In this document: one piece after another, positions 1-36,190 of the stretch
How the letters are laid out: every line of letters starts with the position of its first letter
How positions within the stretch are numbered: position 1 is the first letter of the stretch
Assembly (NCBI GenBank): GCA_029953675.1
Contig: JAMWBK010000005.1
Span: 124,001 to 188,000 of the forward strand
DNA: 64,000 bases
Direction of reading: 5' to 3'
Source: Rhodosorus marinus CCMP1338
Taxonomy: Eukaryota; Plantae; Rhodophyta
Made by a program: the position numbers and the translations under genes
Notes under the pieces: generated by a model
The model's database searches: none
What the model saw: the letters and a program-made list of their open reading frames with translations, nothing else
What the model was told of the DNA's origin: nothing

Positions 1-544
1 CGTCATAACTTCCTGGCAGTCGACCGTTACGGTAACCGGTTTCGGGGGCGAGGTGGTTGCCTACGGCCTGGCGCGGGAGATCATGCGGAGATGGTGCAGA
101 ATTCGTAGTAGCGGCTCCACCTTCCCACATACCCGGTTTCCGGGACAACTCCGTAAGGCGTCCGGTGACGCCTTGCAGCTCTTGCGAGCTGTTGACTCGC
201 GAGTACAGTTGAAAAACTGCTTTGTAGAAGTCTGTAATTTCGGACGCAGCGATGCCCAGGTCCTGGTAGCATCTGTCGAAGCTACGCAGTTGATGCAAGA
301 ATGTGGCTACCGGGTCGGTTGCGGCTGCAGACTCGGTCCGCGTTCTTGCTTGAACATGGCCTGCTTGTGGTTCCGTCGGTGCCTCCTGCACGTCGCCATC
401 AGACTGGTGCTGGTGCCTTTGCAAAACTGCCCGGGTGCCCGAGGGGTCCGGGCCGTGAATGACAAGAGGTTCGGGGTACGGGCCGCGTACCTCCCTCACA
501 ATCATCTTCGGACTCTCTTACGAACTTTTCCTTTTGTCTTCACG
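1..544 (-). mobile_element. 5' end and ORF1 N-terminus of a family-A RLE non-LTR retrotransposon, continuing left of the window
   Basis: Bases 1-~262 are near-identical to 34201-34470, the ORF1 region of the large family-A copy; on the minus strand the element starts directly after GTTAGTCTGG. Confidence 0.8.
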
Positions 545-689
545 CCAGACTAACCCCAGACTAACGTCAGACTAACGTAACTGTAAGCTTTATTGGGCAG
601 CCGCCTAACCGTGGTCCCAGACTAACGTAACCGTAAAATTTACTGGGCAGCTGCCTACTGCAGCGTATCAAACCCCAGATTAACGTAAC
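545..689. repeat. Three telomere-like CCCCAGACTAACGTAA units (545-581, 616-631, 671-689) separating 30-40 bp retroelement 3' tips
   Basis: Direct reading; the intervening pieces match the conserved 3' end GCAGCTGCCCAGTAAAGCTTACGG of families A/D. Confidence 0.85.
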
Positions 690-1526
690 GGTAAGCTTTA
701 CTGGGCAGCTGCCTACTGCAGCGCAACACTACGTCTAATCCTATCTAGGGAAAAACTTACTGGAACCCCGCTACCGGGGTCTCATGCTACGTTCAAAAGA
801 AAAAACAGGCACCAGCGGATTCTCCAACTGGTCCACGCGCAAAGCGCCTAGTGCTATCTCTGCGTTACCTCGCCATAGTTGCCGGTTTATCTGGGATCTC
901 ACGTCTCTCAGCTCCTCACTCCTGTGCAGTAGGTGTTTGCAGCTGTCGCGGAGGAACTCTTGTGCTATTTGCCCCGTACGCCCAAACGTCTCTATCGCTA
1001 TCGGGATGAACTTGTCATCCGGTTTCTCGATCACCATCGCTTCCTTGTAGTGAGCGATTTTCCACTTCTCCGCAGCTCTCGCCGCGTATCCGCTATCATC
1101 TTGGCTCCGCCGCAAATATTTTCCCTGTAATGGTGACACCACAGTCACATCCAGCGCATACCTTTGTTTGGTCCTCGGATGCCTAGCAACGATATCAGGT
1201 CGCAGTCCGTAGTTCTCGAAGTACCCCTCAGGTTCTTGCTCTACTTCCATGAACTTCCATCGCCTCAGCCACCGTGCCAGCTCTCTGCAGATTTCGTCGT
1301 GCCTACGTTGCCACAGTCCAGTTGATGTTGGGCAGTGATGAAACCGTTGTACCCCAGTCCTTCCGTGTTTACTCCGGCAACTAGTGCACTTCTCGGTGGT
1401 CCGCAATCCCGGAATTGGCAGCCCCAGCAGTTGTCGACGTTTACCTGCATCTCAACCGCACTCAATTTTTTCGGTGTCAGCGTTGGTATTTCACGCAGCC
1501 AGACTCCCGACCCGGATCCCGCGGCG
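690..1526 (-). mobile_element. 5'-truncated family-A element (CCHC + RLE domain + 3' UTR)
   Basis: ORF 771-1406: CTSC...HHC, RHDE, RPDI, LDVTVVSP, K..HY, FIPIAIETFG, i.e. zinc knuckle plus PD-(D/E)xK nuclease. Confidence 0.9.
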
Positions 1527-1539
1527 GGGGAGTAAAAGA

Positions 1540-1730
1540 GGTGCTCCGCAACAGAAAGCAGTGCAAGATCTGAGCAAAGCGCGGTAAACGGGCGTGGCAA
1601 GCCACTAAACAAACATAAACCCCTCCAGAAAAATATTTGTAACAAAAGCATCTAAAATTTAGATGCATCAAGTTGCTACACTTGATAGAACAGATACTAC
1701 ACTTGATCTTAGCCAAAAGGCCGAGAAGAT
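1540..1730 (-). ncRNA. U2: Full-length U2 snRNA sequence, probably a retrocopy
   Basis: Starts ATCTTCTCGGCCTTTTGGCTAAGATCAAGTGTAGTATCTGTTCT (canonical U2 5' end and branch-point pairing region). Stem IIa ATCAAG/CTTGAT, stem IIb GCATCTAA/TTAGATGC, IIc pairing TGTAGCAA/TTGTTACA, Sm-like ATTTTTCTGG, stem IV with TTGCAC loop; 191 nt. Confidence 0.95.
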
Positions 1731-1873
1731 CCCCAGACTAACGTAACCGTAAACTTTACTGGGCAGCTGCCTACTGCAGCGTATCACTAGTGCTACTACT
1801 ATCTAGGGAAAAGCTTACGCTAACCCCGCTACCGGGGTCTCATGCTACATAAGAAAAAACTGGGACCAGTGGA
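1731..1873 (-). mobile_element. Telomere-like unit (1731-1747) plus ~125 bp family-A 3' tip
   Basis: CCCCAGACTAACGTAAC followed by the antisense 3' UTR (gcagctgcctactgcagc, ctaccggggtctcatg). Confidence 0.85.
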
Positions 1874-2600
1874 CCCTAGACTACTTTCTACGCTGCCTCG
1901 CCTACCCCTTTGGAAGAACACTTGCACGGGAAGCGGACGCCCGGACGCGTTATCACCTCGATACGCTATTTGGAGGCCTCACTACTACGGCCATCGAGGA
2001 CCCTGACTACGAAAACTCTACACTAGCCCAGATCGCACTCCCATGTCGATGGGGAGGACTGGGATTCGCTACTAGACATCGGATCCAGCCCATCGCCTTC
2101 TACTCGGCCCGGTGCGAAACTTTCGAAGGTAATATATAAATAACGGGGAATGGCCATATCTCACAGAGGTACAAGAGCAATCATCTTCAGAGGTACCTGC
2201 AGACACACACACACTGAGGAGAATCCAAAGGTCGACAGCACAGCTTCCTGACCAAATCCGCGCGTCTGCAGCAGCAACAACGCAGACTGCGCCCAGAGGC
2301 CCCCGAGCGAATCAAGACCTTGGCCACCCTGAAGCAGAGAACCGAAACCGCCGCAGGAGCAGAAGAAGCCCGACCATGGAAACATGGTTCCATTCAACAA
2401 ACCCTCTCCAGAGAGGCACACTATGCAGCTTTCCAAAGACTAGTATCGAGCAAATCTTGGCTGAAGATCGGGCCAGAATTCGGTCCGCAGTCGGAGCTGG
2501 ATCAGGAGTGTGGTTACGGGAAATGCCGACGCTCGCCCCAAACTGAGTACAGTAGAACTGCAAGTGAATGTACGACAGCTGTTGGGTTTGCCGATACCGG

Positions 2601-2900
2601 TGTAACGATTCAGGTTTCCAACTGTCCGGATCCAAGTTATTTCCCAAACCTCCACTATTTTTTATGTTTTTCTTATCTTGGATACCTGCCTCTAGCTCTC
2701 ATCTTAGGAAGGAAGGTCGTAACTCTCGTATTTATAGTCTTCTGACCCATGACCTGGGTATGCTAGATTACTATTATTAGCCAAGACCGTACCATATCTT
2801 GCCCGCTGCGAGCCATCTTGGCCTTACCAGTTTTTGTACCCATTCTGGTTATTTTTAGCTCACCGATACGTTTAGCCAGATGTCAGGTCAGGACGTCACA
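2601..2900 (-). repeat. 3' LTR
   Basis: TGTAAC...GTCACA; differs from 7291-7590 at one base that I could see (ctt/cct). Confidence 0.95.
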
Positions 2901-2912
2901 CTCCTCCCCACT
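2901..2912 (-). promoter_or_regulatory. Polypurine tract
   Basis: AGTGGGGAGGAG immediately before the 3' LTR on the minus strand. Confidence 0.8.
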
Positions 2913-2923
2913 GAAAGAGAGAG

Positions 2924-5900
2924 CTACCCGGTTGCTGAAGAGGCTGCTCTATGAAGGTTAACATAGTATCTAATTTGCTTCCGAGTATTCTGATTCTGAG
3001 GTAGTTGATGGTAAGGTAACCATCTCAAGTCATCGGTGGTCTCACCTTGGAAGTAAACGAAATATTCGTCCAGCTGCGCAGCATTCAGTCGATGCCCAAG
3101 TACTGACTTAATCTCTCTTTGTGAATAAGTGGGTAGAAACGCTGTCGTCTTAGGAGTACTTCCTGGTTCAGGTCCATTAAATTTCCGCAAGAGAGATACG
3201 TGGAAAACGTCGTGAATGTCCTGCTTTCCTCCCAGATCCAACTTGTAAGCGACTTCTCCGATTTTTCGTAGAATCTTAAAAGGTCCAATATATCGGGGTC
3301 GAAAAACGTTTGAACCTGGAAGTTGGAGATTCTGTGTAGATAAAAGGACATAATTTCCTACTTCGTAGCTGATCTCCTTTCCTCGATCATAGTAATGACG
3401 TTGACATTCTTGGGCGTAACGTAGGTTAGCTTTTGCGAGCAACCGTTGGTCCTGTTGTTGTTGCATCATAACTGTGGCGGCCTCAGGTAGTGGTCGGGAG
3501 GGATTTTCGCTGGCGGGAACTGTGATGTCAAAAGGTAATCTCGGATTCGCGCCATAAAGCAACTCGAAAGGCGAGAATTGCGTTGAGTCTGAAACCTGGC
3601 AGTTGTAAGCTAGCTCTGCAATTGGAAGGTCGGTCGCCCAGGTCGAGGTTGTTGAATTACATCTCAGGTATGTCTTGAACGTCTGGTTCGTTCGCTCGGT
3701 TTGTCCGTCTGTTTGCGGATGATACGCCGTGCTTAGTTTCTGCTGGATCTTTATCAGCCTCATTAATTCCTTCCAAAAATGCCCCGTGAATTTTGAATCT
3801 CGATCCGAAACAATATTTTCAGGTACCCCCGCGAACCTAATCCAATGACGCATGAATAACTTCGCGGTTGTCTGTGCAGTCGCCGTTGTCGTTGTTGGAA
3901 GGAAACGGGCGTATTTGGAGAACCGATCGACAATGACAAGGATCGCGTCAAAGCCTTCGGTGGTCGTCGGTAAGGCCGTAATGAAATCCATAGAAATGGA
4001 TTGGAACTTACTATCAGGTATCGGCAAAGGTTGTAGCTTTCCTGCTGAGTATCGCAGTGGCTTCTGTTTCTGGCAGACTTCGCAGGTTCGTAGGACGTCT
4101 TCAATATCCCGCTTTAACGTCGGCCAGTAGTATTTCCGCTTTAGTAGACTGATGGTCTTCGTGATTCCGAAATGACCACCCGTAGGTTCCGTGTGGTAGC
4201 TTTCCAAAAGTTCGGGTACCATGGAGTCTGGTATACAGATTCGGTGATGCCGGTACAGGACGTCGCCCCTTCTGATAAAACCTTGCTCCCGATACTTCGG
4301 AGGACTTTGATAGATCTCCGCAAACTCAGGGTCTTCGAGGTACGCCTGCGACCAGTCCACATCGGTCGTGATAGTGGACTCAACCATCTGTTGCACGGCA
4401 TGACGACTTAACGCATCCGCAATATTCTCCTTGCCTTTTTTATACTCTATCGTAAAGGAGAAGGGCAACAGCCGGTTGACGTAACGTGCTTGCCGTTTGG
4501 TGAGTTCCTTCTGAGAGCGAAGGAACCTCAGCGGGTGGTGGTCCGTCCGAACGGTGAATTCTGAGCCCTCCAGATACATTCTCCAATTTAGGATCGCAGC
4601 TGATAATGCGAATAATTCCTTCTCATAGGTCGAGTATCTGGTCTCGGCTCCAGAAAATCGTTTGGAAAAATAAGCGATGGGGTGCTCGCCATCGTCGAAC
4701 CGTTGAAGGAGGACGGCCCCCATACCTTGATTACTGGCGTCTGTATGTACAATGAAGGTGCGTTGGAAGTCTGGTGTACGAAGCACGGGTTGTTCAGTAA
4801 TCTGCTGCTTCAATATCTCGAATGCTTTTTGCTGTTCTGGGCCCCACTCAAACTTGACTTCGTTCTTGGTTAATGCAGTCAAAGGTGCCGTAGTCATGCT
4901 AAACTTCGGAATGTAATTTCGTAGGTAATTTGCGAAACCCATGAAAGAACGTATATCTTTAACGTTCTGAGGGGTTGCCCACTGCCGTATCGCTTCTACC
5001 TTAGCAGGATCTGGTCGTCGGGTTCCGCTACCCACTAGATGTCCGAGGTAACAAGTTTCGGGTACTCCGAACGTACATTTAAATGATTTCGCGTACAATT
5101 TATGCGCCCGTAGTTTGTCGAAGACTAAATTCAGATGTACTCGGTGTGTCTCCAGGTTTTGCGAGTAGACAACAATGTCGTCAAAGAAAATTTTGACAAA
5201 GTTATTTAGCTCGCTGAAGAATATGTGGTTCAACAGTCGGGTGAACACTGCGGGTGCGTTCTTCAACCCGAAGGGCATGACTAGCCATTCGTACAGTCCG
5301 AATGGTGTCGTGAAGGCTGTTTTCGGTACGTCGCCTTCATTCACCCGCAACTGCCAGTAGCCACCTCTGAGGTCAATTACACTCAGGTATTATGCAGATC
5401 CCAATGCGTCTAGGCAGTCCTCAATGCGCGGCGGACTTGTTTGATTGGTGATGGTTTGTAAATTCAACCGTCGATAATCAATACAAAGTCTCTTGCTTCC
5501 ATCCTTCTTATCCACGAATAGACAGGGCGACGCGAAAGGAGATGAACTTGGTCGAATCAACTTCCTCTCCAATAACTTTTGTAATTGCCTCTTAAGCTCT
5601 TGTTGATCGGGCAGGCTCATGCGGTAGGGCCGTTGCACCGCTGGTTCTGCTCCGGGTACTAGCTCGATCCCAAAGTTGACCTCACGCCAGGGAGGTAACT
5701 CATTGATCGTATCCGCAAAGACGTCCGGGTAAGCTGTAGTGATATGTTCCGTCAATTGTTTTTCTTCATTTTTTCGTTGGTTGTTCCATGCAGTAGCTTC
5801 TGGTTGTTTCATACGTTCTGTTATCTGGCCAAGGTTCACTTCCTTATCAATTTCCTCATCAAGATGTTTTTCTGACTCATTTTCAGGTTCATCAGGGTTT

Positions 5901-6292
5901 TCAGGATCGTCAGAGTTTATGTCTGACACTGCCTCTGGCATCAGGGTTAGGGTTTGTTCCGGTATCAAAATTAAAGTCTGGTTCTGGAGATCCAATTGTG
6001 CGTTAAGACTTTTCAGAAAGTCTCTTCCTAGGTATCCAGGGCTTGCGGCGTCCTTCACAATATAGGGTTGCCAATTGAAGCTATGACCGCCGAGTTGTAA
6101 GGTCATTTTGGCCTTGCCCAATATTTCTATTGACGCGCCCGGGTAGGCTGTGTCCAATTTCCCGTGTTGAGTCGAAATTGTTGGAGTGACGTCCGGTCTC
6201 CCTCTCAAGACGGAATGACTGCTCCCTGTATCGACGAGCAGTGTAACGGCCTTACCATTCACCAAGCCAGGTACCGTCATATCATTATTCAT
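2924..6292 (-). pseudogene. pol: gypsy pol (protease-RT-RNaseH-integrase-chromodomain-like) with one in-frame stop at 5390-5392
   Basis: LVDTGSS protease; FFDDIVVYS RT; VHTDAS/ELFAL RNase H; H..H..C..C plus SMDF/SDRD/GQTERTN integrase. ORFs 5390-6292 and 2924-5350 share a frame across DALGSA*YLSVIDLRGGYWQ. Confidence 0.9.
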
Positions 6293-6333
6293 CTGGATCG
6301 AGACGCCTTTTCTTGCAGCAGTGGCGGCGTCGG

Positions 6334-7107
6334 TTACTGCTGCGTTCGCGGCGGAGCCGATTTCGAGACCGTCATGTCTCGGTCAGGATTATCCCAACAG
6401 ATGCGTTGGGTATGGCCCGTCTTGCCGCAGTAGTTACAGATTATGTTCGCATATTTGCTTCGGTTGAGCTCTTGCGTCCTTGGTGGATATTGACGTCCCG
6501 AACGGGTTTGTCTGCTCGCAGAAGGAGTCGCCCTTGGTACCGGTTTTGGTTGTTCGTAGGGCGTCTGTTCCTTACGCGAATTTGAGCTGCAACTCGCAAT
6601 GTCCGCTCCTTCGATCTTAAGGGCCAGGGCCTGAGCCTCTTCGAAGGTGGTTATATCTTGAATGTAAATATATTTCTTGAAGTCTGGTTGCAACCCTTCC
6701 ACGAAGCGATCAAATTTCTCCGAGTCTGATATTTCTCCAACCTGGATCAAGCATTTGTTAAAATACGCTGTATAGGCGGCGACCGTTGTGCGTTGTACGG
6801 CGCGTGCCAATTGCTGCTTGGCGCGGATCTTCGCGTCAGCCGGGTAAAATTGGGATTTTAACGCTTCCTCAAATCCGGCGTAGTGTAGGGGTCTTTTCGC
6901 GTCCGGGATGAGGGACCACCAGTAGGAGGCGTCCCCTGTGAGGTAACCCTCCGCCAAAGTAATTTTGTAGTCATCGTCGTTGTCGGGCAATCGGGCTAAT
7001 TTGAAATAAGTCCGAAGGTTGTTCAGGAAGGTGCTTATGACGAGCGCGTCCCGCTTGCCATCGTATGCCTTAGGCTGCGGTGCTTGAATCTTTATCAAAG
7101 ATGCCAT
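6334..7107 (-). CDS. gag: gypsy gag
   Basis: PKAYDG capsid motif and CNYCGKTGHTQRIC zinc knuckle. Confidence 0.9.
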   Translation of the reverse strand: MASLIKIQAPQPKAYDGKRDALVISTFLNNLRTYFKLARLPDNDDDYKITLAEGYLTGDASYWWSLIPDAKRPLHYAGFEEALKSQFYPADAKIRAKQQLARAVQRTTVAAYTAYFNKCLIQVGEISDSEKFDRFVEGLQPDFKKYIYIQDITTFEEAQALALKIEGADIASCSSNSRKEQTPYEQPKPVPRATPSASRQTRSGRQYPPRTQELNRSKYANIICNYCGKTGHTQRICWDNPDRDMTVSKSAPPRTQQ

Positions 7108-7277
7108 TCTCGTTCAAGTTTTCTGATTCTCTGGTTAAAAAGGTCAATTGCCGTTTGTTGATAGGCTAACTGCTTCTGGGTCGTCGTCTTTGAAGGTGTT
7201 ATAGGATATTCCTCTGGTTCTGAAGTTTCAGGAGTTCCTCTGGTTTCGGGGTTCAGGTTCCGTCAATCGCAACACAT

Positions 7278-7289
7278 GCGATGAGACCA
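7278..7289 (-). promoter_or_regulatory. Primer-binding site TGGTCTCATCGC
   Basis: TGG starts 1 nt after the 5' LTR; the complement ends ...GATGAGACCA like a tRNA 3' end. Confidence 0.7.
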
Positions 7290-7290
7290 A

Positions 7291-7590
7291 TGTAACGATT
7301 CAGGTTTCCAACTGTCCGGATCCAAGTTATTTCCCAAACCTCCACTATTTTTTATGTTTTTCTTATCTTGGATACCTGCCTCTAGCTCTCATCCTAGGAA
7401 GGAAGGTCGTAACTCTCGTATTTATAGTCTTCTGACCCATGACCTGGGTATGCTAGATTACTATTATTAGCCAAGACCGTACCATATCTTGCCCGCTGCG
7501 AGCCATCTTGGCCTTACCAGTTTTTGTACCCATTCTGGTTATTTTTAGCTCACCGATACGTTTAGCCAGATGTCAGGTCAGGACGTCACA
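7291..7590 (-). repeat. 5' LTR
   Basis: 300 bp, near-identical to 2601-2900. Confidence 0.95.
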
Positions 7591-8340
7591 AGCGGCAATA
7601 CGGACGTCCGGGAAGTGTACTAGTTGTGGTAGTACTCATGGTACTAACGGCGTAAAAAGGTTTCACCACTGCCCAACATCGACGGGACTATGGCAGCGAA
7701 GGCACGACGAAATCTGTACGAAGCTGGCGCGATGGCTGAATGCTGGAATTTCATCGACATTAAGCAAGAACCGGAGGGGTACTTCGAGAACTACCGACTA
7801 AGACCGGATATAATTGCAACTCATCCCAGGACGTTCCAAAGGTATGCGCTGGATGTGACGGTTACATCGCCGTGCAGGAGAAAAACGTGAATCGGAGTGG
7901 GTCAGAGAACGGATATGCAGCGAAAAGAGCGGAGAGGTGGAAAATGGCGCATTACAAAGAGGCTATGTCAGTGGAGAAGCCAGATGACAAGCTCATTCCC
8001 ATTGCGATCGAGAGCTTTAGGCGTACAGGACAAATGGCGCAAGAATTTCTACGAGATAGATGCAAGTATTTGTTGCACCGGAGCCTAGAACTGAGCCTAG
8101 AACTGAGGGATGTTCGGGCTCAGATCAACCGCAAATTATGGCAGGGGAACGCGGAGATAGCGATAGGCGCTCTCCGAGTGAACCAGTTGGCGAATGCACT
8201 GGTCCCTGTTTTTCCTTTCGAACGTAGCATGAGACCCCGGTAGCGGGGTTGGCGTAAGCTCTTCCCTAGATAGTAGTAGCACTAGTGATACGCTGCAGTA
8301 GGCAGCTGCCCGGTAAAGTTTACGGTTACGTTAGTCCGGG

Positions 8341-9394
8341 CTAACCCCAGACGGGACAGATGGCACAGGAGTTTCTCCGGGACAGCTGTAAACACCTATT
8401 GCACAGGAGATGATCCGTTTATTCAGAGGCTAACTACCCTGATAAGCGAGAGACAAGACGCTGATGACGCGCGTCCACAAACAAAGAAGAATTGGAGCGC
8501 CACAGGGTCAAAGAAAGCTCCGTGAGCAGACTATCTAAACGCCCTGGGTCGGAGCGAGGAGCTGAGCGATGTAAGATCGCAGATCAACAGGCAACTTTGG
8601 CGAGGTAATGCAGAGATAGCCCTAGGCGCTTTGCGCGTGGACCAGTTGGAAAATCCACTGGTCCCTCTTTTTTCTTTTGAACGTAGCATGAGACCCCGGT
8701 AGCGGGGTTCGGGTAAGTATTCCCCTAGATAGCCGTTAGTCTGGTCCGTAGCCGTAAGCTTTACCCCAGACTAACCTAATCGTAAGCTTTACTGGGCAGC
8801 TGCCTACTGCAGCGTAAGACTACTTCTATCGCTATCTAGGGGAATACTTACCCGAACCCCGCTACCGGGGTCTCATGCTACGTTCAAAAGAAAATAGAGG
8901 GACCAGTGGATTCTCCAACTGGTCCACGCGCAAAGCGCCTAGGGCTATCTCTCTGCATTACCTCGCCAAAGTTGCCTGTTGATCTGCGATCTTACATCGC
9001 TCAGCTCCTCGCTCCTGTGCAATAGGTGTTTGCAGCTGTCCCGGAGAAATGTGTCCCGTCTGGGGTAGTAGGCAGCTGCCCAGTAAAGCTTACGGTTACC
9101 CAATGACACAAGAGTTCCTCCGCGACAGCTGCAAACACTTACTGCACAGGAGTGAGGAGCTGAGAGATGTGAGATCGCAGATGAACCGGCAACTATGGCG
9201 AGGTAATGCAGAGATAGCACTAGGCGCTTTGCGCGTGGACCAGTTGGAGAATCCGCTGGTGCCTGTTTTTTCTTGAACGTAGCATGAGACCCCGGTAGCG
9301 GGGTTCCAGTAAGTTTCTCCCTAGATATGATTAGACGTAGTGTTGCGCTGCAGTAGGCAGCTGCCCAGTAAAGCTTACGGTTACCCCAGACTAA
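8341..9394. mobile_element. Cluster of 40-350 bp family-A 3' fragments in both orientations with telomere-like scraps at the junctions
   Basis: Repeated QEFLRDSCKHLLHRSEEL...SMRPR tails; scraps ctaaccccagac, gttagtctgg, accccagactaac, gtctggggt, cccagactaa. Confidence 0.8.
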
Positions 9395-9404
9395 AATAAC
9401 CCCG

Positions 9405-27450: not shown

Positions 27451-27899
27451 AATATTTGTGGCGGAGCGAAGATGATAGCGGATACGCGGCGAGAGCTGCG
27501 GAGTAGTGGAAAATCGCTCACTACAAAGAAGCGATGGTGGTGGAGAAACCGGATGATAAGTTCATCCCGATAGCAATAGAGACGTTTGGGCGTACGGGGC
27601 AAATGGCACAGGAGTTCCTCCGGGACAGCTGCAAGCACTTACTGCACAGGAGTGAGGAGCTGAGAGACGTGAGATCCCAGATAAACCGGCAACTATGGCG
27701 AGGTAACGCAGAGATAGCATTAGGCGCTTTCCACGTGGACCAGTTGGAGAATCCGCTGGTGCCTGTTTTTTCTTTTGAACGTAGCATGAGACCCCGGTAG
27801 CGGAGTTTCCAGTAAGTTTCTCCCTAGATAGGATTAGGCGTAGTGTTGCGCTGCAGTAGGCAGCTGCCCAGTAAAGCTTACGGTTACGTTAGTCTGGGG
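27451..27899 (+). mobile_element. Family-A 3' fragment plus telomere-like unit (27882-27899)
   Basis: ORF 27534-27800 and conserved 3' UTR. Confidence 0.85.
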
Positions 27900-28204: not shown

Positions 28205-30050
28205 AGAGGGAGAAAGAACTGCTACAAGAGCAGCAGCAGCAGCAGCAGCAACAGGACCAGCACAGGGGAGCAGCACAGGAAGGAGAGAGGAATGGGGAAC
28301 ACCTTGCAGCGGAGCAGGCCACAGCAGACCCAGCCCGAACAAGCGCAGCAGAGTGGCCCCCTACGCCGAGGTCAGATGACACAGATACCCAATCAACATG
28401 TGGGCCGCCCCATTCCACAGTCGTCAGAGCCAAACGGACACCTGTCTTCGAGCCCAGTGGGACAGACGCAGCCCGGGCAGCAGTTGATGGGACAGCCGCC
28501 GATGGGACAGCCGCCGATGGGACAGCCACCGATGGGACAGTCCCACCCAGTCCTCTTGCGACGGGACAACCTTGAATTTCCTACGCTGGCACAAACTGCC
28601 TCTGGCACCACATATGCCCAACGTGCTTCAAAAGCTGTCGGAATGCGGCAACATACGGCTCTCCGCCACTTGCATGCCACAGTGGGGGGCAGCCAGTGGG
28701 CCTCCCACACAGTTCCCGTGCTGGCCACCCTACGGAACGTGAGGCCACCTAGGTATGAATCCGTTGCGCTCGCTGATTATAAGCATTTGCTATGCCAAGC
28801 CCTAGGCATTCCGGTCAGTATGGTCCCACACATTGACTTTGTCGCTACGCACGCTCTGCTAGTATGTCATCCAGATGCGATTCCGCTTATCAAGAGCTGT
28901 ATCGCTCGCGGAGTGTTCCGGACGGGAGTGTTTGGCTCCTTTGCAAAGCGTCGCAGGGACCACCAAGTCTCCCTGCATACGGGGTTAGCACCTGATCCAC
29001 AGAATTTGCTGGGCTACAACGAACGCCAGCACATTGCTGAGCAGGACATTTCTTGCCACACCTTGGCACGGGCGATTGAGCAAGTTCAACGTATCAAGCA
29101 CAACCTATCGACACGACCGCTGCCATTCTCGGTCTCAGTCGTGATTGACGCGCAACTTGACGCCCGATTAGAATACCTGGCTACCCGTGTCGCGCCTAGT
29201 CCGCAGGAGCCGGCAGCCACCTCGGGGAACACAACCACCAACGCAAACGCAACCCACCCTGCAGTCTCCACCCCGTCTGAAGTGGCCACCCACCCTGAGG
29301 CATCGGGGCACTCTGAAGTGGCCACCCACCCTGAGGCATCGGGCACTCTGAAGTGGCAACCCACCCTGAAGTGGCAACCCAACCTGAGGTCTCAACTCAT
29401 TCTGACGGAGGAGACGAGAACCCGCACGCGGAGCTCCCCTGCAACCTTCAGGAGCCTTCTCAACAGGATTCGGAGTCCTCCAGCGATATAGAAGTCGAAC
29501 AAGATGCGGAAAGGTCTACCACAGGCGACATCAGAGCCCTGAAGAAGCCGCGACGAGCCGAGACACAGTCACACCACCTCGCGAACATATATGAGTGCAG
29601 GTGACTCCCGGAAGAGACTGCGCATCACACCGTTGATCACATCCGACCCAGGGGCATGGCAGCACAAACTGCTAGAGTTCCTGGAGACGCACACCCATGG
29701 GGGACAAAGTTGGTGGAAAGTTACCCACAGTCCAGTACGGACCCGGGAACATGTGCCGAATGCTCAGGTCAAGAAATGGAACACGCTTCTGCACCAAGCC
29801 CTAGGATATGCCCTCGACTCCGATGCTGATCCTCTTCTGCGCATTTTCATCATGGTATTACCGGGTCTTGCGCTCGGAAAGTGCGATCTCCGGCCAGGAG
29901 TGCAAGTTGAACATGTCATGGAAGGGGAATTTTCGCAAGTATGGATGGCACTCAACGCGAAGGCAGCGTGCCGACCCTCGGCACGAGCGCGACGGGCCGA
30001 TGGCCATGGGGAAAAGCGTCGCAATGCGCAAGTAATTCGGTTGGCCATTT
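28205..30050 (+). mobile_element. 5' part of a family-F element: ORF1 (ATG 28292, frameshift ~29350) and ORF2 N-terminus (29591 onward)
   Basis: ORF1 with QPPMG and EVATHPEASGHS repeats and the LRNVRPP domain; ORF2 start aligns with family-A ORF2 (W..F.E..T.GG..W....HSPV.TR..VP.AQV..W). Confidence 0.8.
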
Positions 30051-33000
30051 CACGTCTCTCAGCTCCTCACTCCTGTGCAGTAGGTGTTTGCAGCTGTCGC
30101 GGAGGAACTCTTGTGCCATTTGCCCCGTACGCCCAAACTTCTCTATCGCTATCGGGATGAACTTATCATCCGGTTTCTCGATCACCATCGCTTCTTTGTA
30201 GTGAGCGATTTTCCACTTCTCCGCAGCTCTCGCCGCGTATCCGCTATCATCTTGGCTCCGCCGCAAATATTTTCCCTGTAATGGTGACACCACCGTCACA
30301 TCCAGCGCATACCTTTGTTTGGTCCTCGGATGCCTAGCAACGATATCAGGTCGCAGTCCGTAGTTCTCGAAGTACCCCTCAGGTTCTTGCTCTACGTCCA
30401 TGAAGTTCCATCGCCTTAGCCACCGTGTCAGCTCTCTGCAGATTTCGTCATGCCGACGTTGCCACAGTCCAGTTGATGTTGGGCAGTGATGAAACCGTTG
30501 TACCCCAGTCCTTCCGTGTTTACTCCGGCAACTAGTGCACTTCTCGGTGGTCCGCAATCCCGGAATTGGCAGACCCAGCAGTTGTCGAACGTTTACCTGC
30601 ATCTCAACCGCACTCAATTTTTCGGTGTCAGCGTTGGTATTTCACGTAGCCAGACTCCCGACCCGGATCCCGCGGCAGACCGTATTCGAGCTCGGTTTTC
30701 AGGGGAGATTCGTGGGTTGGTGACCAGCGTTTGGAATGCACAATGGTGTGCCTCTCGAGAGAGGGTTTGTTGTATTGAACCATTATTCCAAGCTGCAGTC
30801 TCGCCCGGGGCGCTTCGAAGAGATGTTTCTCGCGGTTGTTGCAGGGTAGTCAGTGCCAAGATCCGCGGCGGGGTTTCTGGTCCGAGCCTCCGTTGTATTG
30901 CTCGCGACGATGCACAGATCTGGTCCGCCAGCTGTGCAGTCGACCATCGTTGATCCATCGGCTCGTATGTGTCTGGTGAGCGTTCTGCCGTAACCTCCCG
31001 CTCTAGTTCAGTCAGGTATGGCCATTCATCTTCATTGTTCCGGAAGGTGTTTCTCCATGACGAGTAAAACGCGATGGGTTGGACGCGCTTTCGAGTAGCG
31101 AAACCCAAACCTCCCCAGCGGCAGGGCAGAGCGATTTGGTCCGAGATCAGCTCTGCGTAGTCCTCGTCCTCTACAGCTGTCGTAGCGAGGCCGCCGAATA
31201 GAATTTCCAGGTGATATCTGGTCATCACGTCGGCCTCGCGTGCCAGATTTCTTCCAAACTCGTATGCGAGGCATCGTAGCACATAGTCTAGTCGCGTTTC
31301 TGCACAGAACCTGAAGAGGACAATTTGCGTGGTAAGCTCCGGTTGTGGGAGCTTGGCAATTTCATCAAAGAGTTTCTCATGCTTATTTTGCAACCCCCGG
31401 CACTCCTGTTCGATATGTTCTCGGCTGCCTATCGGTATCGAGTGGATGGTGACTCCGTCTCTGGTCACTTGCACTCCAGGAATCTCATGGTTGACCACTC
31501 GCGTGGTAGTCAGTGTTCGCCCGTACACAGTGCACTTGCCGAGTTGCAGGCGTGCTCCAACAGAGGGGAGCACAGTTTTTGCCCATGCCAGGGACGCCTT
31601 CACGGCTTGTAGCGACCCGACAATCGTGATATCGTCGTGGATAGCAACAATCGTTTCGTTGGGGAACTTGGCTCGCAACGCTCTTAGAAAGGGCGCCAGG
31701 GATAGTGCATGTAGCACCGGCCCCAGTGGATCTCCCTGTTGGACTCCTGTAGTTGCTTGGAGAGTCAGGCGAGAGGTGTCGGTTTCGTTCTGTCCCGGGG
31801 AAGATCGCCAGCCACAGAGCGTCGGTGAGTCCGCGTTGTCGCTTCCATAGCCAAGTCTATATACTGGTGCAAGCTCCGGCAAGTGTTTGTCCACCAGTTG
31901 CTTGGCAAGGCGTCGGTCGATGCGATTAAAGGCATTCTCTAAGTCTAGCCGAAGGACCACCGGCCGAAGGACCACCGAATCGGGTTCGCATGACAAATGG
32001 GCCTGGATCGCGTGAAGTGAGCGTTCGCACCCGCCACTTACTCCAATACCCAGTTGTAAGGGCACCAGGAGCTCACGCACCCTGTCCATAACCGCGTGAA
32101 GAGTCTATTGCGTTGCTACCTTGCGCAAAACTTCTGGTACTCCGATAGGGCGAACTCCGGGATGCTCCTGCGGCACTGAACCCTTGTTAGGCTTCGCGAA
32201 CGGCAGGAGTCGACTACTGCGAAGGGCGCGGGTCAGAGCCGGGGAAAATTTCTCAGGAGCGGTCGCCAGTTGTCGCAATACACGAATCAACGCCACTTGC
32301 GTCGGTTGAGTTGCACCTTGGAGGTGTTCCGCTCGGAGACCGCTAGGACCTGGGCTCTTGCCCTGAGGAAGACGTGCCGCGATCGACATGAGGCCCTCGT
32401 CGGCAGCTTTTCTTGAATCCCACCGCCGCTTTAGTGTTTCGGTATTCAGAGCGAGCAAAGATTGCAGGGCGTGTGCAATCTCGTCTGGTGAGTCACCTTC
32501 CGCCGGGTTGGGAAAGAGCGCTTGTAGTTGTCTCCACGTAGCCGCGGTAAAAGGTGCCATTTCGGTGGCCTGTAGGCTCCGAGCTGCATCTGAAAGGCGG
32601 CCAAGGTGTGCTAGTTTCAGCGCTCGCTTGTGGCGCCCGAGATGTTTGCGTCGAACCGCTTCAGCTCCTTGCGGTGCGGTAGTATGCGACAGCATAGACG
32701 CCTTGTCCTCTAGAGCGCTCCAGACCGTAGAGAATTCTCCTTCAAGCACATGCGATACCTGCATGCCAACATCAAGTGCAGAGTGTCCAAGGACCAGGCC
32801 TGGAAGTCCGACAAGAAGCAGGCTGGCGTTTGTTGGTGCGGTGCTGTCCATAGAGAGCTCTAATGCAGCACGGAAGAGGCAGCTCCATGTTTGAACCTGG
32901 GCGCGTGGCACAAATCGCCGTGTGGGAACCGGGCTGTGTATAAGGCGCGTCCACTGCCTGCCTCCTTCCGTGACGTCGTCGACGAAGACGCTCCACCGCC

Positions 33001-34470
33001 TGATCCAGTCTTGACGATCCGAGAAGAACAGAGGCTCGTCGCGGCGTCGTTTGATTCCCCTACGTCTGCTCGGCATTATTGCGCTGGGTTTTCCTGGCTC
33101 TCCTGCGTGTCCATCGCGTGATGGTTGCCGTCAAGGGCAACCTGTGTCACAGTGGTATCCGGTGGAGTCTCCACGGCTGCCGGAGTCATCTCAGTATCCG
33201 GTCCGGTTCCATCGGCGGATACTCGCGAGCGCTTCTGTTGAGGTGGCTCCGGAAGGTTGCAGAGGAGCTCCGCATGGGGATTGTCCTCGTGTGCTGCGTT
33301 CTCAGGTACTTGGGAAGTCGCGCTAGTCTCAACCTGGGCGTCAACTGTCCCACGGTCTGCCTGTACATCCCCTGGAAGGGACGAGGCTTCAGGGTCTGCG
33401 TTCGAAGCGGCTGCAGGCCCAGGGGGTTCCGCGCATTCCCCGGGTACCTCAGGCGGATGTTGTCTGCCTTTTAGGAGCTCTAGTCGTGCCTCAAGAAACT
33501 CGTAGAGCGCTGCGAGAGCGTGGAAGGAGAGTTGTCGCCTGCGGATCCTCGAACGAATGCGGACAAGCTGCTCGATGGCCCGCTTCAGCGTGTGGGCAGC
33601 GATATCCCCGGGAGCGATGGTCTGACGTTCGAGGTAACCCAGAAGGTTGTCTGGGTCCAGCGCCTGGCCAGTGTAAAGGCTTACTTGTCTATCGGCGTGT
33701 CGTTGTGTGAAGGATCCGAATATCCCAGTCCGGAAAACTCCTCGGGAGATGGCACTTTGGAGAATCGGAATTGCGTCTGGATGGCACAGCAGGCAGGCAT
33801 GGGAGGCAATAAAGTCCACATGCACCACATTAGAGCTTGGCATACCAAGTGCTCTGCAAAGAACCGTTGCAAAGTCCGCAGAGGCCACCTCATCCAGCCT
33901 TGGGGGTCGGACATTCCGTAGCGTCGCGAGGACTGGAGCAACATCGGGTCCCCAGCCAGACCCCCCCGACCGTAGCGTGCAGTTGCCGTAGGGCAGCCTG
34001 TTGGGTCTGGGGTCCAGGGCGTCCACAAGTTCTGGAACGAGCATCTCCTCCTCTCGCTGGTTCTTTTTATGCTGCGAAATCGGCGAAGGTTGGCCTTGTA
34101 GGGCCCTCCCCGATGGCTGGGAATGTCTCCGCATAGTGTCCTAGATCCCGGACACCTGTCCCTCCCTGGGGCGCAGGGAGCCGGGTTCCTAAATCATGGA
34201 CGGCATAACTTCCTGGCAGACGACCGTTACGGTAACGGGTTTCGGGGCCGAGGTGGTTGCCTACGGCCTGTCGCGGGAGATCTCGCGGGAGATCATGCGG
34301 AGATGGTGCAGAATTCGTAGTAGCGGCTCCACCTTCCCACATACCCGGTTTCCGGGACAACTCCGTAAGGCGTCCGGTGACACCTTGCAGCTCTTGCGAG
34401 CTGTTGACCCTCGAGTACAGTTGAAAAACGGCTTTGTAGAAGTCTGTAATTTCGGACGCAGCGATGCCCA
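30051..34470 (-). mobile_element. Near-full-length family-A element: ORF1 (33076-34470) and ORF2 (33076 to ~30055) with a few disablements
   Basis: PGPSGLRAE, VRPIGVPE, LDLENAFNRI, GVQQGDPLGP, AIHDD, RLE motifs; stop at 32105, frameshift ~30615; TAATG stop-start at 33074-33078. Confidence 0.9.
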
Positions 34471-36151
34471 GCCCTCACGGAGAAAGTCTTGGGTCATCTG
34501 CCCTGTTCTGCCGAAGGTTTCTATCGCAATAGGAATCAGTTTGTCATCTGGATGCTCTGTCGCCATCGCCTCCTTGTAGTGTGCAAGTTTCCAACGCTCC
34601 GCCTGTTTTGCTGCATAACCATTGTTGTCTTTGCTGTTGGCTAGGTGTCTCGCCTGTAGGGGTGACACCACCGTCACATCGATCGCAAATCGTTGCCAGG
34701 TTCGACGGTGTATAACTACCAAGTCAGGTCGTAGATTCGAGTTCGTGAAGTAGTCTGTAGGTTCTTGCTGAACATCTCTGAGCTGCCATCTGTTAAGCCA
34801 GCGCGCCAGCTCAGTGCAGAGCTCATCATGTCGCCGTTGCCAGAGCCCAGTCGAGGTCTGACAATGATGGAATCTTTGTACACCGTTCGTACGGTGTGTA
34901 CTATTGCACGTAGTACACCTCTCCGTCGTCCGCAGTCCCGGAATCGGGAGGCCCAGCAATTGTCGGATATTCAGGTGCATGCCTCTCCCACTCAATTTTC
35001 GGGGTCCGAATTGTGGCAAATCTCTTAGCCAGACGCCTGAACCTGCTCCTGCAGCGGAACGGATTCGGGCACGATGTTCCGGGTCGAGTAAGGGATCCGT
35101 GACCAGTCGGGTGAAAGCAGTAAGGTGTGCCTCTCTTGAGAGGGTCTGTGGTAAGGAACCTTGCTTCACCGCAGACTGGTCAGGGGGGGAATTTGCTGCA
35201 GGGGCAGCAGTCAGGTACGTGGGGTTGAGGAGCTGTCTTATTCGGGGGCTGGTTTCCGGTCTCAGTCTCCCCCTAATGGCTGTAGTTGCCACTAGGATTT
35301 GGGAGGGGAGGTCGTCAGTAGAGCGGTGTAGTGTCATCGGGGGGTTGAGCAGCTGTGGTGTAGCTTCCTGGGTGCGTTCTAACAATTTTTGTAGGTGGGG
35401 CCAATAGCCCTTGTTAGCTGCAAAGGTTTGCATCCAACCTGTGTAGAAAGAAATAGGTTGGATGCGCCTTCTAGTGCAGAAGCCCAGTCCCCCCCATCGG
35501 CAGGGGAGTGCTACCTGCTTCCAAACCGGGTGCGTTCTATCAGGGTCGTCCGCATGGGCTGTTTGTAGACAGCCTAGTAGCCTTTCCAACTGTAGTCGTG
35601 TGTTGTAGTCCGCTTCTCGTGCTAAACTTCTGCCGTAGTGGTAAGCCACTGTCCTTAGGGTGTAGTCAAGTCTCGTTTCCGAGCAGTATCGGAACAGCGC
35701 CAGTTGTGTGTTGAGCTCTTCAGGAGGCAGATGGGCGATCTCTTTGCCCAGTGTTTCATGCTTGTTTTGTAGTGTTCTCAAAGCTTCTTCCACATATTTT
35801 CTCGTCCCAATGGGAATGGAGTGTATGGTTACTCCTTCGCGAGAAACATTGAGGTCCGGCATGTATCTGGTAACCAGTCGAGGGGATGCTATGTGGTAGC
35901 CGAATAGGGTGCACTTTTGAGGCTGTAGTTCCGCCCCAATGGTAGGGAGGGCATTTTGACTCCACAGTAGGGCATCTTTCAGGGACTCCAGGGGGCCCAC
36001 GAGCGTGATATCGTCATGGATGGCGACAGTAGTCAGCTCAGGGTATTTCTGCCGCAGTGCTTCGAGAAAAGGCGCCAGTGAGAGGGCGTGTAAGGCAGGT
36101 CCCAAAGGATCTCCTTGTTGTACTCCCGTCTGCGCTTGTAGGTGTAGGCGA
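34471..36151 (-). mobile_element. Family-D element fragment (RT C-terminal half + RLE), frame intact
   Basis: ORF 34261-36105 with GVQQGDPLG, AIHDD, HHCQTSTGLWQRRHDE, RPDL, IDVTVVSP; 5' junction abuts the telomere-like repeat. Confidence 0.9.
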
Positions 36152-36190
36152 TAACCCCAGACTAACGTAACCCCAGACTAACGTAACCCC
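36152..36190. repeat. 2.4 perfect tandem copies of CCCCAGACTAACGTAA
   Basis: taaccccagactaacgtaaccccagactaacgtaacccc defines the 16-bp period. Confidence 0.9.

Follow-up and report, generated by a model that had tools for sequence, protein, structure and literature searches.

Chimeric retrocopies that join a small RNA to a LINE are known from mammals and from Magnaporthe. In mammals U6, and also U3, 7SL, 5S and tRNA, are found fused to L1, while the MGL LINE of Magnaporthe makes both bipartite and tripartite chimeras (PMC4476161, PMC11838501, PMC2104539). These retrocopies carry the small RNA in sense orientation 5' of the 5'-truncated 3' part of the LINE, lack a promoter and lie at the LINE's target. 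For the origin of U6/L1-type chimeras three routes are recognised, namely template switching, RNA ligation and sequential insertion. The biochemical demonstration of the jumping step comes from the R2 elements of insects. Bibillo and Eickbush reportedly found that the R2 reverse transcriptase (RT) jumps end to end in vitro, from the 5' end of one RNA to the 3' end of another, often with the addition of a few untemplated nucleotides.

Non-LTR elements of the CRE clade that target telomere repeats have been described from fungi. MoTeR of Magnaporthe, FoTeR of Fusarium and Cnl1 of Cryptococcus encode an RT with a C-terminal CCHC/REL region, have no poly(A) and form mostly 5'-truncated, head-to-tail copies at chromosome ends with short repeat tracts between them (PMC7367193, PMC12857005). 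The main text of the FoTeR paper describes no template-switch chimeras, since it contains neither the word 'template' nor the word 'chimeric' (PMC12857005). Two further non-LTR elements, Utopia with a restriction-like endonuclease (RLE) and Keno with an AP-type endonuclease (APE), insert inside U2, the sequence of which picks up again behind the element at nucleotide 39, within the conserved TGTAGTATCTG stretch (PMC4640811). The SINEU elements combine an snRNA head with a LINE 3' tail and are multi-copy, transcribed and thought to have arisen by template switching (PMC4494074).

Here we describe a full-length U2 snRNA sequence in the genome of the red alga Rhodosorus marinus. Most probably it is not a gene but a processed retrocopy of U2 RNA, set at the integration motif of a non-LTR element within a subtelomeric array. 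The locus has the layout of the mammalian and MGL chimeras. However, the LINEs behind those chimeras cut with an AP-type endonuclease, carry poly(A) tails and insert at dispersed AT-rich sites, where they leave target-site duplications. The Rhodosorus element instead encodes a restriction-like endonuclease, lacks poly(A) and is specific for a G-rich repeat. The captured RNAs differ as well, being U2 and a pre-tRNA with an 8-10-nt linker in place of U6, and the linker is longer than the few nucleotides usual for R2. With the fungal CRE elements the Rhodosorus element has in common the RT with its CCHC/REL region, the lack of poly(A) and the mostly truncated head-to-tail copies. The fungal elements occupy canonical TTAGGG arrays right at the chromosome ends, whereas the Rhodosorus repeat is an irregular 11-16-mer of putative telomerase origin and its array extends more than 125 kb inward. 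Compared with SINEU, the architecture is alike, but there is a single U2-headed unit with an 853-nt coding tail and nothing that indicates recopying. Utopia shares the physical joining of an RLE non-LTR element to U2. Targeting of U2 genes of the Utopia/Keno type is nevertheless excluded, because their site is inside U2 and the Rhodosorus U2 runs uninterrupted across it, with elements beyond both of its ends.

The window, by which we mean the whole 64-kb stretch of DNA analysed, lies 124-188 kb from the start of contig JAMWBK010000005.1, in a genome of 31 Mb (PMC10250338). In the RepeatMasker table of the genome paper LINE/CRE makes up 9.04% of the genome and there are no SINEs. The U2 locus, approximately 125 kb from the contig start, is held in a subtelomeric array of CRE/SLACS-like endonuclease-bearing non-LTR elements, mostly head-to-tail, and the same G-rich repeat terminates all element copies of the array. 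Such arrays lie 2.6-6.5 kb from the contig end on a second contig (L008) and 124-171 kb from the end of the window's contig. The G-rich strand faces the near contig end for most elements of both contigs, and plus-strand copies also occur in the window. No analysis of this large CRE array was found in the literature searched, and the locus draws attention to it.

Read along the minus strand, the locus begins with a 143-nt, 5'-truncated 3' fragment of a CRE-like element (1873..1731) that ends in ...ACGGTTACGTTAGTCTGGGG, with the terminal motif at 1742..1731. Six further element 3' ends in the window match the fragment at 84-92% identity, the best being 8197..8340 on the plus strand (92.4%). It is followed by the U2 snRNA (1730..1536), a 10-nt linker, TTACTCCCCC (1535..1526), delimited by sequence comparison as the interval from the end of the U2 model to the start of element homology, and the 853-nt, 5'-truncated 3' part of an element that we call family A (1525..673). 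Behind it, at 672..544, homology identifies very short 3'-terminal element fragments (55 nt and approximately 50 nt) and three 11-nt repeat units, GTTAGTCTGAC, GTTAGTCTGGG and GTTAGTCTGGC, each joined behind the preceding GGG(G). The 5' region of the next element begins directly after these units (543..1) and runs off the window; within it, 1..259 matches 34201..34471, which precedes the ORFs of the reference family-A copy, at 92.6% identity. A 55-bp direct repeat (1786..1732 and 670..616, 98% identical) might be taken for a target-site duplication that flanks the whole U2-family A unit. We rejected this as unnatural for the priming geometry. Other copies of the same 55 nt are 92-96% identical to it, so the repeat is more plausibly a further tiny insertion.

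The reference family-A copy (30047..32200, minus strand) was recognised by its RT domain (Pfam RVT_1, E=7.8e-7, 29.4 bits, just under the cut-off of 29.6) and by translation of its CCHC/REL region. The translated C-terminus reads CTSC...HHC-X9-RHD-X~20-E-X~9-RPD-X14-D, the first part being a CX2C...H.C knuckle. In the CRE/SLACS clade the RT precedes a C-terminal CCHC knuckle and a REL motif of the form RHD...E...(R/K)PD...(D/E), the REL consensus being that given in PMC12857005. The homologues of the reference copy are Rhodosorus marinus proteins. By its predicted protein family A is a CRE/SLACS-like RLE element; the original prediction of an RLE element stands, with the refinement that it is CRE/SLACS-like and not R2-type. 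The copy next to U2 (1525..673) retains, with one frameshift, the coding sequence for the CCHC zinc knuckle and for the endonuclease motif RHD...E...RPD...D. It corresponds to 30676 and downstream in the reference and is 97.5% identical to 30676..30047 over 631 nt and 95.1% identical to 27899..27451. Homology, translation and tblastn place its truncation point between the RT and CCHC/REL domains of ORF2, and it has a normal 3' UTR that ends in GTTAATCTGGGG at 673.

The U2 sequence matches Rfam RF00004 at 1732..1536 on the minus strand. The hit scores 140.7 bits (gathering score 46; E=1e-28) and covers model positions 1-192 without truncation. The two 5' G's added by Rfam belong to the upstream motif, so U2 proper is 195 nt long and runs from ATCTTCTCGG to GCACCTCTT, where the original prediction had counted 191 nt. 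The invariant 5' region AUCUUCUCGGCCUUUUGGCUAAGAUCAAGUGUAGUAUCUGUUCU with the GUAGUA branch-point recognition sequence, a U-rich Sm-type site (AUAUUUUUCUGG) and all stem-loops of the model are present; intact stems had been predicted. It is the sole Rfam match in the 64 kb at E<=1, and ARAGORN found no tRNAs in the window. A second U2-like locus was seen at 18299..18060 of L008. It is degenerate, with 44.1 bits and GUAGCA instead of GUAGUA, and its homology to the window U2 also begins exactly at ATCTTCTCGG. Because only its first ~70 nt can be aligned and its score is below the gathering threshold, it was rejected as a yardstick for the native 3' end of U2. No small RNAs were found in the five transcriptome contigs scanned, and a 22-mer from U2 stem IV had no match in the metagenome/transcriptome scan. 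Exact-protein look-ups with P0003, the family-A RT ORF and a Ty3 gag gave no new loci, and those with host-gene proteins returned parts of the window only.

Several features of the junctions bear on the origin of this U2. Its first base directly abuts ...ACGGTTACGTTAGTCTGGGG. There is no room for an snRNA promoter, as predicted, because the 143 nt upstream (-1 to -143) are ordinary element 3' UTR. On the 3' side family-A homology begins 10 nt past U2, where a gene would have its own flank or processing signal. A promoter within the element UTR may formally exist, red-algal snRNA promoter motifs being undefined. The prediction had U2 pass through a short extension, TCTTTTAC, at once into family A; the collinearity with a 5'-truncated copy is confirmed, with homology from 1525 (GCCGCGGG...), and the extension is replaced by the 10-nt linker. 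The first four linker nucleotides, TTAC, continue the upstream repeat unit (GGGG^TTAC, where ^ marks a junction), and the reference family-A copy has the CTCCCC of the linker as well, 25 nt upstream of the truncation point. Ordinary element-to-element 5' junctions are typically GGGGTTA(T/C)^, and those in front of 5'-truncated copies are GGGGTTAT^, GGGGTTAC^ or GGGGTTA^. The unit as a whole has a small RNA at its 5' side and a 5'-truncated LINE 3' part with a normal 3' end, both in the same orientation. It is bounded by the motif at both ends, and the TTA(C) between its parts may equally be a remnant of the target. Because the target is itself a repeat, a target-site duplication is not definable.

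The G-rich motif GTTAGTCTGGG occurs 16 times in the window with at most one mismatch, against 0.93 expected. The repeat is an irregular 11-16-mer, either TTAGTCTGGGG or TTACG followed by TTAGTCTGGGG, and the integration motif reads ...GTTAGTCTGGGG. An unoccupied target and a typical junction were modelled on 36150..36190 (minus strand), which holds 2.3 tandem copies of the 16-mer GGGGTTACGTTAGTCT, then GGGGTTAT^, then a 5'-truncated element. U2 had been predicted to lie flush with a telomere-like repeat. It is flush, but the motif at U2 is the terminal motif common to the elements and not a clean telomere array. The repeat may be the telomere sequence of the alga. Nothing relevant to this was among the top-ranked of 142 literature string matches, the main text and supplements of the genome paper mention telomeres and give no telomere repeat sequence, and a 28-mer spanning two repeat units had no match in the metagenome/transcriptome scan.

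The original prediction called for a look at the motif for other small-RNA chimeras, and a second composite was found on L008 (3570..3192), approximately 6 kb from the contig end. It has the same architecture as the U2 locus. Three repeat units ending in GGGG are followed by a tRNA 3' half from approximately position 38 (GCGAGAGGTCCCGGGTTCAATTCCCGGATTTCCCC), the trailer TGACGAACTTTT, a 10-nt filler and family A, whose truncation point is approximately 70 nt (within about 75 nt) from that of the U2 case. As with U2, the tRNA is bracketed by GGGG^ and ^TTA. In a scan for the T-arm motif through all sequence examined, this fragment was the sole match adjoining a repeat. The tRNA starts beside position 37, which is usually modified; such a start fits an RT stop on a real RNA, not a piece of a gene. 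Small-RNA retrocopies at motif junctions recur, because this second composite is independent and involves a different RNA and junction. The cases total two, and one of them was chosen by the original prediction. Approximately 5 of the approximately 24 motif junctions examined precede a young family-A copy, and the independently found tRNA case is among them. At both small-RNA junctions there are 8-10 extra nucleotides and none at the four or five ordinary element-to-element junctions checked. No microhomology was found at the RNA/family-A junctions of either the U2 or the tRNA case.

We regard it as highly probable that the U2 sequence is a retrocopy made by the machinery of the family-A element. 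As to how it was made, our leading mechanism, to which we give an even chance, is a single-event template-switch chimera of U2 and family A. Target-primed reverse transcription would start on the 3' end of family-A RNA, and after approximately 850 nt the RT would reach the end of a broken template or fall off. It would go on to copy a U2 RNA from the 3' end to its first nucleotide, and the composite cDNA would then be joined to the upstream GGGG. This RNA was probably a precursor with approximately 8-10 extra 3' nucleotides. We infer from the sequence that U2 and the family-A piece entered together, that the linker comes from a precursor and that the steps followed each other in this order. 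Consistent with a switch, the U2 5' end directly adjoins the motif in which every element copy ends, both U2 ends are model ends, and U2 has the same orientation as a young 5'-truncated family-A copy with a normal 3' end. The extra nucleotides at both small-RNA junctions also point this way. On the other side, rejoining the flanks of U2 yields a perfect continuation of the repeat, as a stand-alone insertion at GGGG^TTA predicts. Both composites start straight after GGGG, unlike the usual GGGGTTA(T/C)^, and a chimera does not predict such a start. A switch would also have proceeded without microhomology at either junction, and the precursor extension is an assumption. If the linker is a pre-U2 extension, the native U2 flank should continue with TTTTACTCCCCC past ...CACCTCTT; likewise the native tRNA gene should have the trailer TGACGAACTTTTAATGTCTTAG if the linker of the L008 composite is derived from a transcript.

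Two sequential events are a serious rival, though a less likely one. Here an older, 5'-truncated family-A copy would have been in place behind GGGGTTAC^ and a filler, and a stand-alone U2 cDNA would have entered later at GGGG^TTA. The enzyme would nick the junction and take as template a free U2 RNA ending in ...CUCUU. The nicked bottom strand ends in AA-3', with which the last two U's of that RNA could pair. When U2 (1730..1536) is removed, GGGG rejoins TTAC to give GTTACGTTAGTCTGGGG followed by TTAC, and 21 of 21 bases match the tandem repeat at 36150..36190. For the rejoined flanks a stand-alone insertion fits about as well as a single cDNA. U2 would then end exactly at the last position of the Rfam model, the older family-A junction would be one of the forms usual before 5'-truncated copies (GGGGTTAT^, GGGGTTAC^ or GGGGTTA^), and the bracketing of the L008 tRNA by GGGG^ and ^TTA would follow the same pattern. 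The array at 544..672 shows serial insertion of tiny fragments at such junctions. However, the enzyme would have to start on an RNA without the conserved element 3' UTR, which all fragments keep, even those of 55 nt. A filler of 6-9 nt at both older family-A junctions is left unexplained, ordinary junctions having none, and chance would have placed both small RNAs before young family-A copies whose truncation points lie within ~75 nt. As both RNAs end in CUUUUA, the U-run of the RNA with one further A could instead account for the TTA. If the linkers come from transcripts, the native flanks would read ...CTCTTTTACTCCCCC for U2 and ...CTTTTAATGTCTTAG for the tRNA. The capture by an RLE element that had been proposed from the outset is upheld as far as a retrocopy at the integration motif, without a promoter and with a recurrence; its further element, a single cDNA made by switching, is rivalled by the 21/21 reconstitution of the repeat.

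The sequence-perfect U2 (140.7 bits) invites the reading that this is a genuine chromosomal U2 gene boxed in by flanking insertions or a rearrangement, either dead or expressed from a promoter in the upstream element 3' UTR. U2 loci may be few in a 31-Mb genome (PMC10250338), and the other U2-like sequence seen is the degenerate one of L008 alone. We consider a gene very unlikely. One element would have to end exactly at U2 +1 and another, truncated copy to begin no more than 10 nt from the U2 3' end, and these elements target their own motif, which a U2 gene lacks. The 143 nt upstream are ordinary element 3' UTR, and the start of the tRNA fragment at ~38 fits an RT stop on a real RNA.

It is very improbable indeed that a transcript from a U2 promoter read through into a nearby truncated family-A copy and that the hybrid RNA was retrotransposed in the manner of a SINE (5' transduction). 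Such a transcript accounts for the exact U2 +1, for a short linker as genomic 3' flank and for the normal 3' end of the element, and SINEs with U1/U2-derived heads and LINE tails are known (PMC4494074). A native U2 3' flank reading ...CACCTCTTTTACTCCCCC would favour either read-through or the template switch. However, family A integrates at the G-rich repeat and not beside U2 or tRNA genes, a single U2-family A unit occurs in the ~130 kb examined, and the RepeatMasker table is without SINEs. The L008 tRNA is moreover 5'-truncated within the tRNA, so it does not begin at a transcription start.

Ligation of U2 and family-A RNAs before reverse transcription, by an RtcB-type ligase as for U6/L1 and followed by copying in one pass, would give the same final structure and is an established alternative for U6/L1 chimeras (PMC6789731, PMC11838501). 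We hold it to be extremely unlikely at this locus. An RtcB-type ligase needs an end with a 2',3'-cyclic phosphate or a 3'-phosphate. U6 typically has such an end, whereas in U2 and in primary Pol III transcripts, which end in U-OH, it would be atypical. Linkers of 8-10 nt are also left unexplained.

An improbable extension of the leading mechanism is that a CRE-like, telomere-repeat-specific element routinely brings small RNAs such as U2 and nascent pre-tRNAs into chromosome-end arrays via their unprocessed 3' ends. Whatever lies downstream would be transcribed from a promoter in the conserved 3' UTR of the upstream element, as in Drosophila HeT-A, and the U2 copies with it. If this were true, the U2 copies could be a reserve or variant supply of U2 or the seed of a U2-headed non-autonomous element.

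To our knowledge, template jumping in the RLE lineage is mainly an in-vitro property of the R2 enzyme, and it is the LINEs with an AP endonuclease (L1, MGL) that are well documented for chimeric and trans-mobilised small-RNA retrocopies. The Rhodosorus copies of U2 and a pre-tRNA would be natural in-vivo footprints of template jumping in the RLE lineage, from the red algae, a distant lineage of eukaryotes. The linkers may record the maturation state of the U2 and tRNA met by the enzyme in the nucleus. Site-specific elements of chromosome ends could in this way seed snRNA pseudogenes and, potentially, SINE-like units.

The window contains a single U2 snRNA match in Rfam, at 1732..1536 (-), which covers model positions 1-192 with 140.7 bits (E=1e-28; the gathering score of the model is 46). 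Relaxing the cut-off to E<=1 added no further RNA-family match, and a tRNA scan of the window gave zero tRNAs. Counted from ATCTTCTCGG, the U2 occupies 1730..1536 (-), or 195 nt, and lies ~125.5 kb from the start of contig JAMWBK010000005.1. The invariant 5' region with GUAGUA, a U-rich Sm-type site and the stem-loops of the model are all present. The sequence ...ACGGTTACGTTAGTCTGGGG abuts the 5' end directly and there is no promoter space in front; the U2 is flush with the integration motif of the neighboring retroelements and shares their orientation. The U2 ends in TTACTCCCCC, and 10 bases beyond, homology to family A, a CRE/SLACS-like non-LTR element with a restriction-like endonuclease, starts at 1525. 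The original prediction of a U2 joined to the repeat at its head and to a truncated retroelement at its tail was correct in the U2 match and both junctions, but not in the exact extent of the linker.

Window positions 1 to ~47,000 are nearly all retroelement, with ordinary genes only after. In the 31 Mb nuclear genome of R. marinus, LINE/CRE elements account for 9.04% (4,036 copies) and SINEs for none in the RepeatMasker table (PMC10250338). Upstream of the U2 lies a 143-nt remnant of a CRE-like element (1873..1731, -), a 5'-truncated 3' end with 84-92% identity to six others. The downstream family-A copy (1525..673, -) shares 97.5% identity with the reference copy (30676..30047) and 95% with a third. 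It begins between the RT and the C-terminal domain, has a normal 3' end at 673, and encodes CTSC...HHC-X9-RHD-X~20-E-X~9-RPD-X14-D with one frameshift, a motif that fits the CRE/SLACS/MoTeR REL consensus (PMC12857005). In the reference copy, the RT portion matches RVT_1 and has R. marinus proteins as its closest relatives. Beyond 673 are found, in order, 3'-terminal fragments of 55 nt and ~50 nt, three 11-nt repeat units, and the 5' region of another element.

The opposite strand (+) carries an older, diverged CRE-like element (1876..2600 and 7591..8340), interrupted at 2601..7590 by a young Ty3/gypsy LTR retrotransposon. The latter has two 300-bp LTRs (TG...CA, 99.7% identical) and codes for gag, protease, RT-RNase H, integrase and a C-terminal Tf2-type SH3 domain; a clean target-site duplication is absent at its flanks (ACCGG vs AGCGG). 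The 143-nt fragment (1731..1873, -) is closest to 8197..8340 (+), at 92.4%, which is the 3' end of the inverted element starting 3 bp away. Their motif-bearing 3' ends point outwards, an inverted repeat flanking that element, and this head-to-head layout might reflect priming at either side of a single break. Element 3' ends also meet in tail-to-tail (inverted) junctions, at window 8330..9400 and at 4730..4770 of L008, a stretch near the start of contig 7, JAMWBK010000007.1 (e.g. GTTAGTCTGGGG-ttcttc-TGGGGTAACCCCAGACTAAC). The arrays are rearranged and not purely head-to-tail.

In the window, GTTAGTCTGGG occurs 16 times with <=1 mismatch (0.93 expected) and the 16-mer GGGGTTACGTTAGTCT 12 times with <=3 mismatches (0.42 expected), in tandem at 36150..36190. 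Several distinct element families share the terminus ...AATAAAG-YTACGG(G)GTTACGTTAGTCTGGGG. Transcriptome contigs L003-L005 (JGI sample 3300016967), which carry close relatives of the family-A endonuclease ORF of the window (~70-80% identical), share this 3' end, and there too it runs through GGGGTTAT into a 5'-truncated copy. At ordinary junctions the upstream 3' end mostly runs through GGGGTTAT, GGGGTTAC, GGGGTTA or GGGGTT into the next 5'-truncated copy without filler. The repeat behind the elements is heterogeneous, with 9-16-nt units and a TCTGGGG core. Irregular units near the end of JAMWBK010000007.1 (L008) are TTAGTCTGGGG, TGTCTGGGG and TTATCTGGGG, and an irregular tract at L008 2690..2650 (-) reads GTTAGTCTGGG-GTTAGTCTGGGG-TGTCTGGGG-TTATCTGGGG-TTAT. 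These units recall organisms with irregular telomere repeats. On both contigs the G-rich strand of most elements faces the near contig end, the direction expected of a telomeric G-strand; plus-strand copies also occur in the window. A literature search turned up no paper reporting the repeat as telomere sequence.

After the retroelement region, the window encodes a 478-aa FAD-binding protein / FAD oxidase (48336..49772). A thermolysin-type M4 peptidase (55796..57877, +) and a HemolysinCabind-repeat protein (L008 16505..17911) lie beside the arrays; both domains are commoner in bacteria, and the genes are possibly horizontally acquired and in subtelomeric regions. An 882-aa ORF without a Pfam domain (36623..39271, -), annotated as a gene in the assembly, is followed ~430 bp downstream by 2.3 tandem 16-mers (36150..36190) and then retroelements. 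The NCBI annotation lists five R. marinus paralogues of this ORF (51-68% identity), one of them 12.6 kb from the contig 7 end, and together they possibly form a subtelomeric gene family. In unique DNA between a HemolysinCabind gene and a PHO4-type transporter gene is a U2-like sequence (L008 18299..18060, -; 44.1 bits, slightly below the gathering score). Its first 36 nt are those of the window U2, the homology beginning at ATCTTCTCGG in both, but GUAGCA replaces GUAGUA and the 3' two-thirds cannot be aligned. The sequence is a U2 copy in decay or else a divergent variant.

Further small-RNA chimeras at repeat junctions had been anticipated, and one was found in the ~130 kb of this genome covered (the window, L008, L009 and L010). 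It lies at L008 3570..3192 (-), ~5.8-6.2 kb from the start of JAMWBK010000007.1, and has the architecture and orientation of the U2 locus. Three repeat units, GTTAGTCTGGGG-tgac-GTTAGTCTGGGG-ttac-GTTAGTCTGGGG, are followed by TGCGAGAGGTC-CCGGG-TTCAATT-CCCGG-ATTTCCC-C and then by TGACGAACTTTT, AATGTCTTAG and CATTGCGCATTCC..., the last being 5'-truncated family A. The middle piece is laid out as a tRNA 3' half, with the anticodon-stem 3' strand, an AGGTC variable loop, a 5-bp T-stem, a TTCAATT T-loop, a 7-nt acceptor strand and the discriminator base. Its T-arm is recognised by tRNA-clan models and is the only one adjoining a repeat in all sequence scanned. The piece resembles eukaryotic tRNA-Gly(GCC). 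CCA is absent and the trailer ends in TTTT, so the source was a primary Pol III transcript; a 10-nt filler separates the trailer from family A. The piece starts at about position 38, adjoining position 37, which is usually modified in tRNAs, and this start is plausibly a reverse-transcription stop. Relative to the truncation point of the U2-linked copy, the family-A part begins ~70 nt further upstream.

The general explanation that fits best by a wide margin, and one we consider highly probable, is that U2 RNA was copied into DNA through target-primed reverse transcription by the element itself. The lack of promoter space, the flush position at the integration motif, the shared orientation and the parallel pre-tRNA fragment, which can sensibly derive only from RNA, all argue for it.

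That U2 and family A arrived in one event, as a single template-switch chimera, has about an even chance of being correct. The enzyme would start on its own RNA and then switch template to the small RNA. All bona fide element fragments, even the shortest, keep the conserved 3' UTR, which suggests that the enzyme does start on its own RNA. Young family-A copies stand behind both small RNAs, and only ~5 of ~24 motif junctions examined have one, which counts for the chimera. So do the 8-10 extra nucleotides at both RNA/family-A junctions, against none at the ordinary junctions checked; they are readily interpreted as 3' extensions that had not yet been processed off pre-U2 and pre-tRNA.

Insertion of a stand-alone U2 cDNA at GGGG^TTA, ahead of an older family-A copy, is the main rival, less probable but with evidence of its own. 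Without the U2, GGGG and TTAC become adjacent again and 21/21 bases of tandem repeat are recovered, and the U2 end is then exactly the Rfam model end. GGGG and TTA also bracket the tRNA piece, and both composites start directly behind GGGG, where GGGGTTA(Y) would be usual. Two points weaken either reading. The two RNAs share the ending CUUUUA, and the TTA may then be just the U-run and one A. The CTCCCC of the U2 linker recurs 25 nt upstream in the reference copy and could mark a small internal skip. The distinction between sequential and chimeric insertions is a known difficulty for L1 too (PMC11838501).

The remaining probability is shared by three readings: read-through transduction, RNA ligation before copying, and a real U2 gene boxed in by elements, which requires two insertions at positions that these elements do not target. 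Utopia/Keno-type targeting of a U2 gene is excluded because those elements insert within U2, the gene resuming at nucleotide 39 after the insertion (PMC4640811).

The architecture of the U2 locus is that of U6/L1-type chimeras (PMC4476161, PMC2104539) and of snRNA-headed SINEs (PMC4494074). Family A resembles fungal telomere-repeat-targeting CRE-clade elements (PMC7367193, PMC12857005). What differs here is the combination of a repeat-specific element of the RLE lineage, U2 and pre-tRNA passengers, a short linker and a red-algal host. Within a limited literature search, we know of no description of small-RNA chimeras of CRE-like elements. The family-A part of the tRNA composite ends internally at L008 3200..3170 (-), where GAGAGCTGG meets GGTTACGTTAGTCTGGGG, and the break suggests that priming took place at an internal CUGG resembling the terminal motif. 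If so, initiation would depend on base-pairing between target and RNA.
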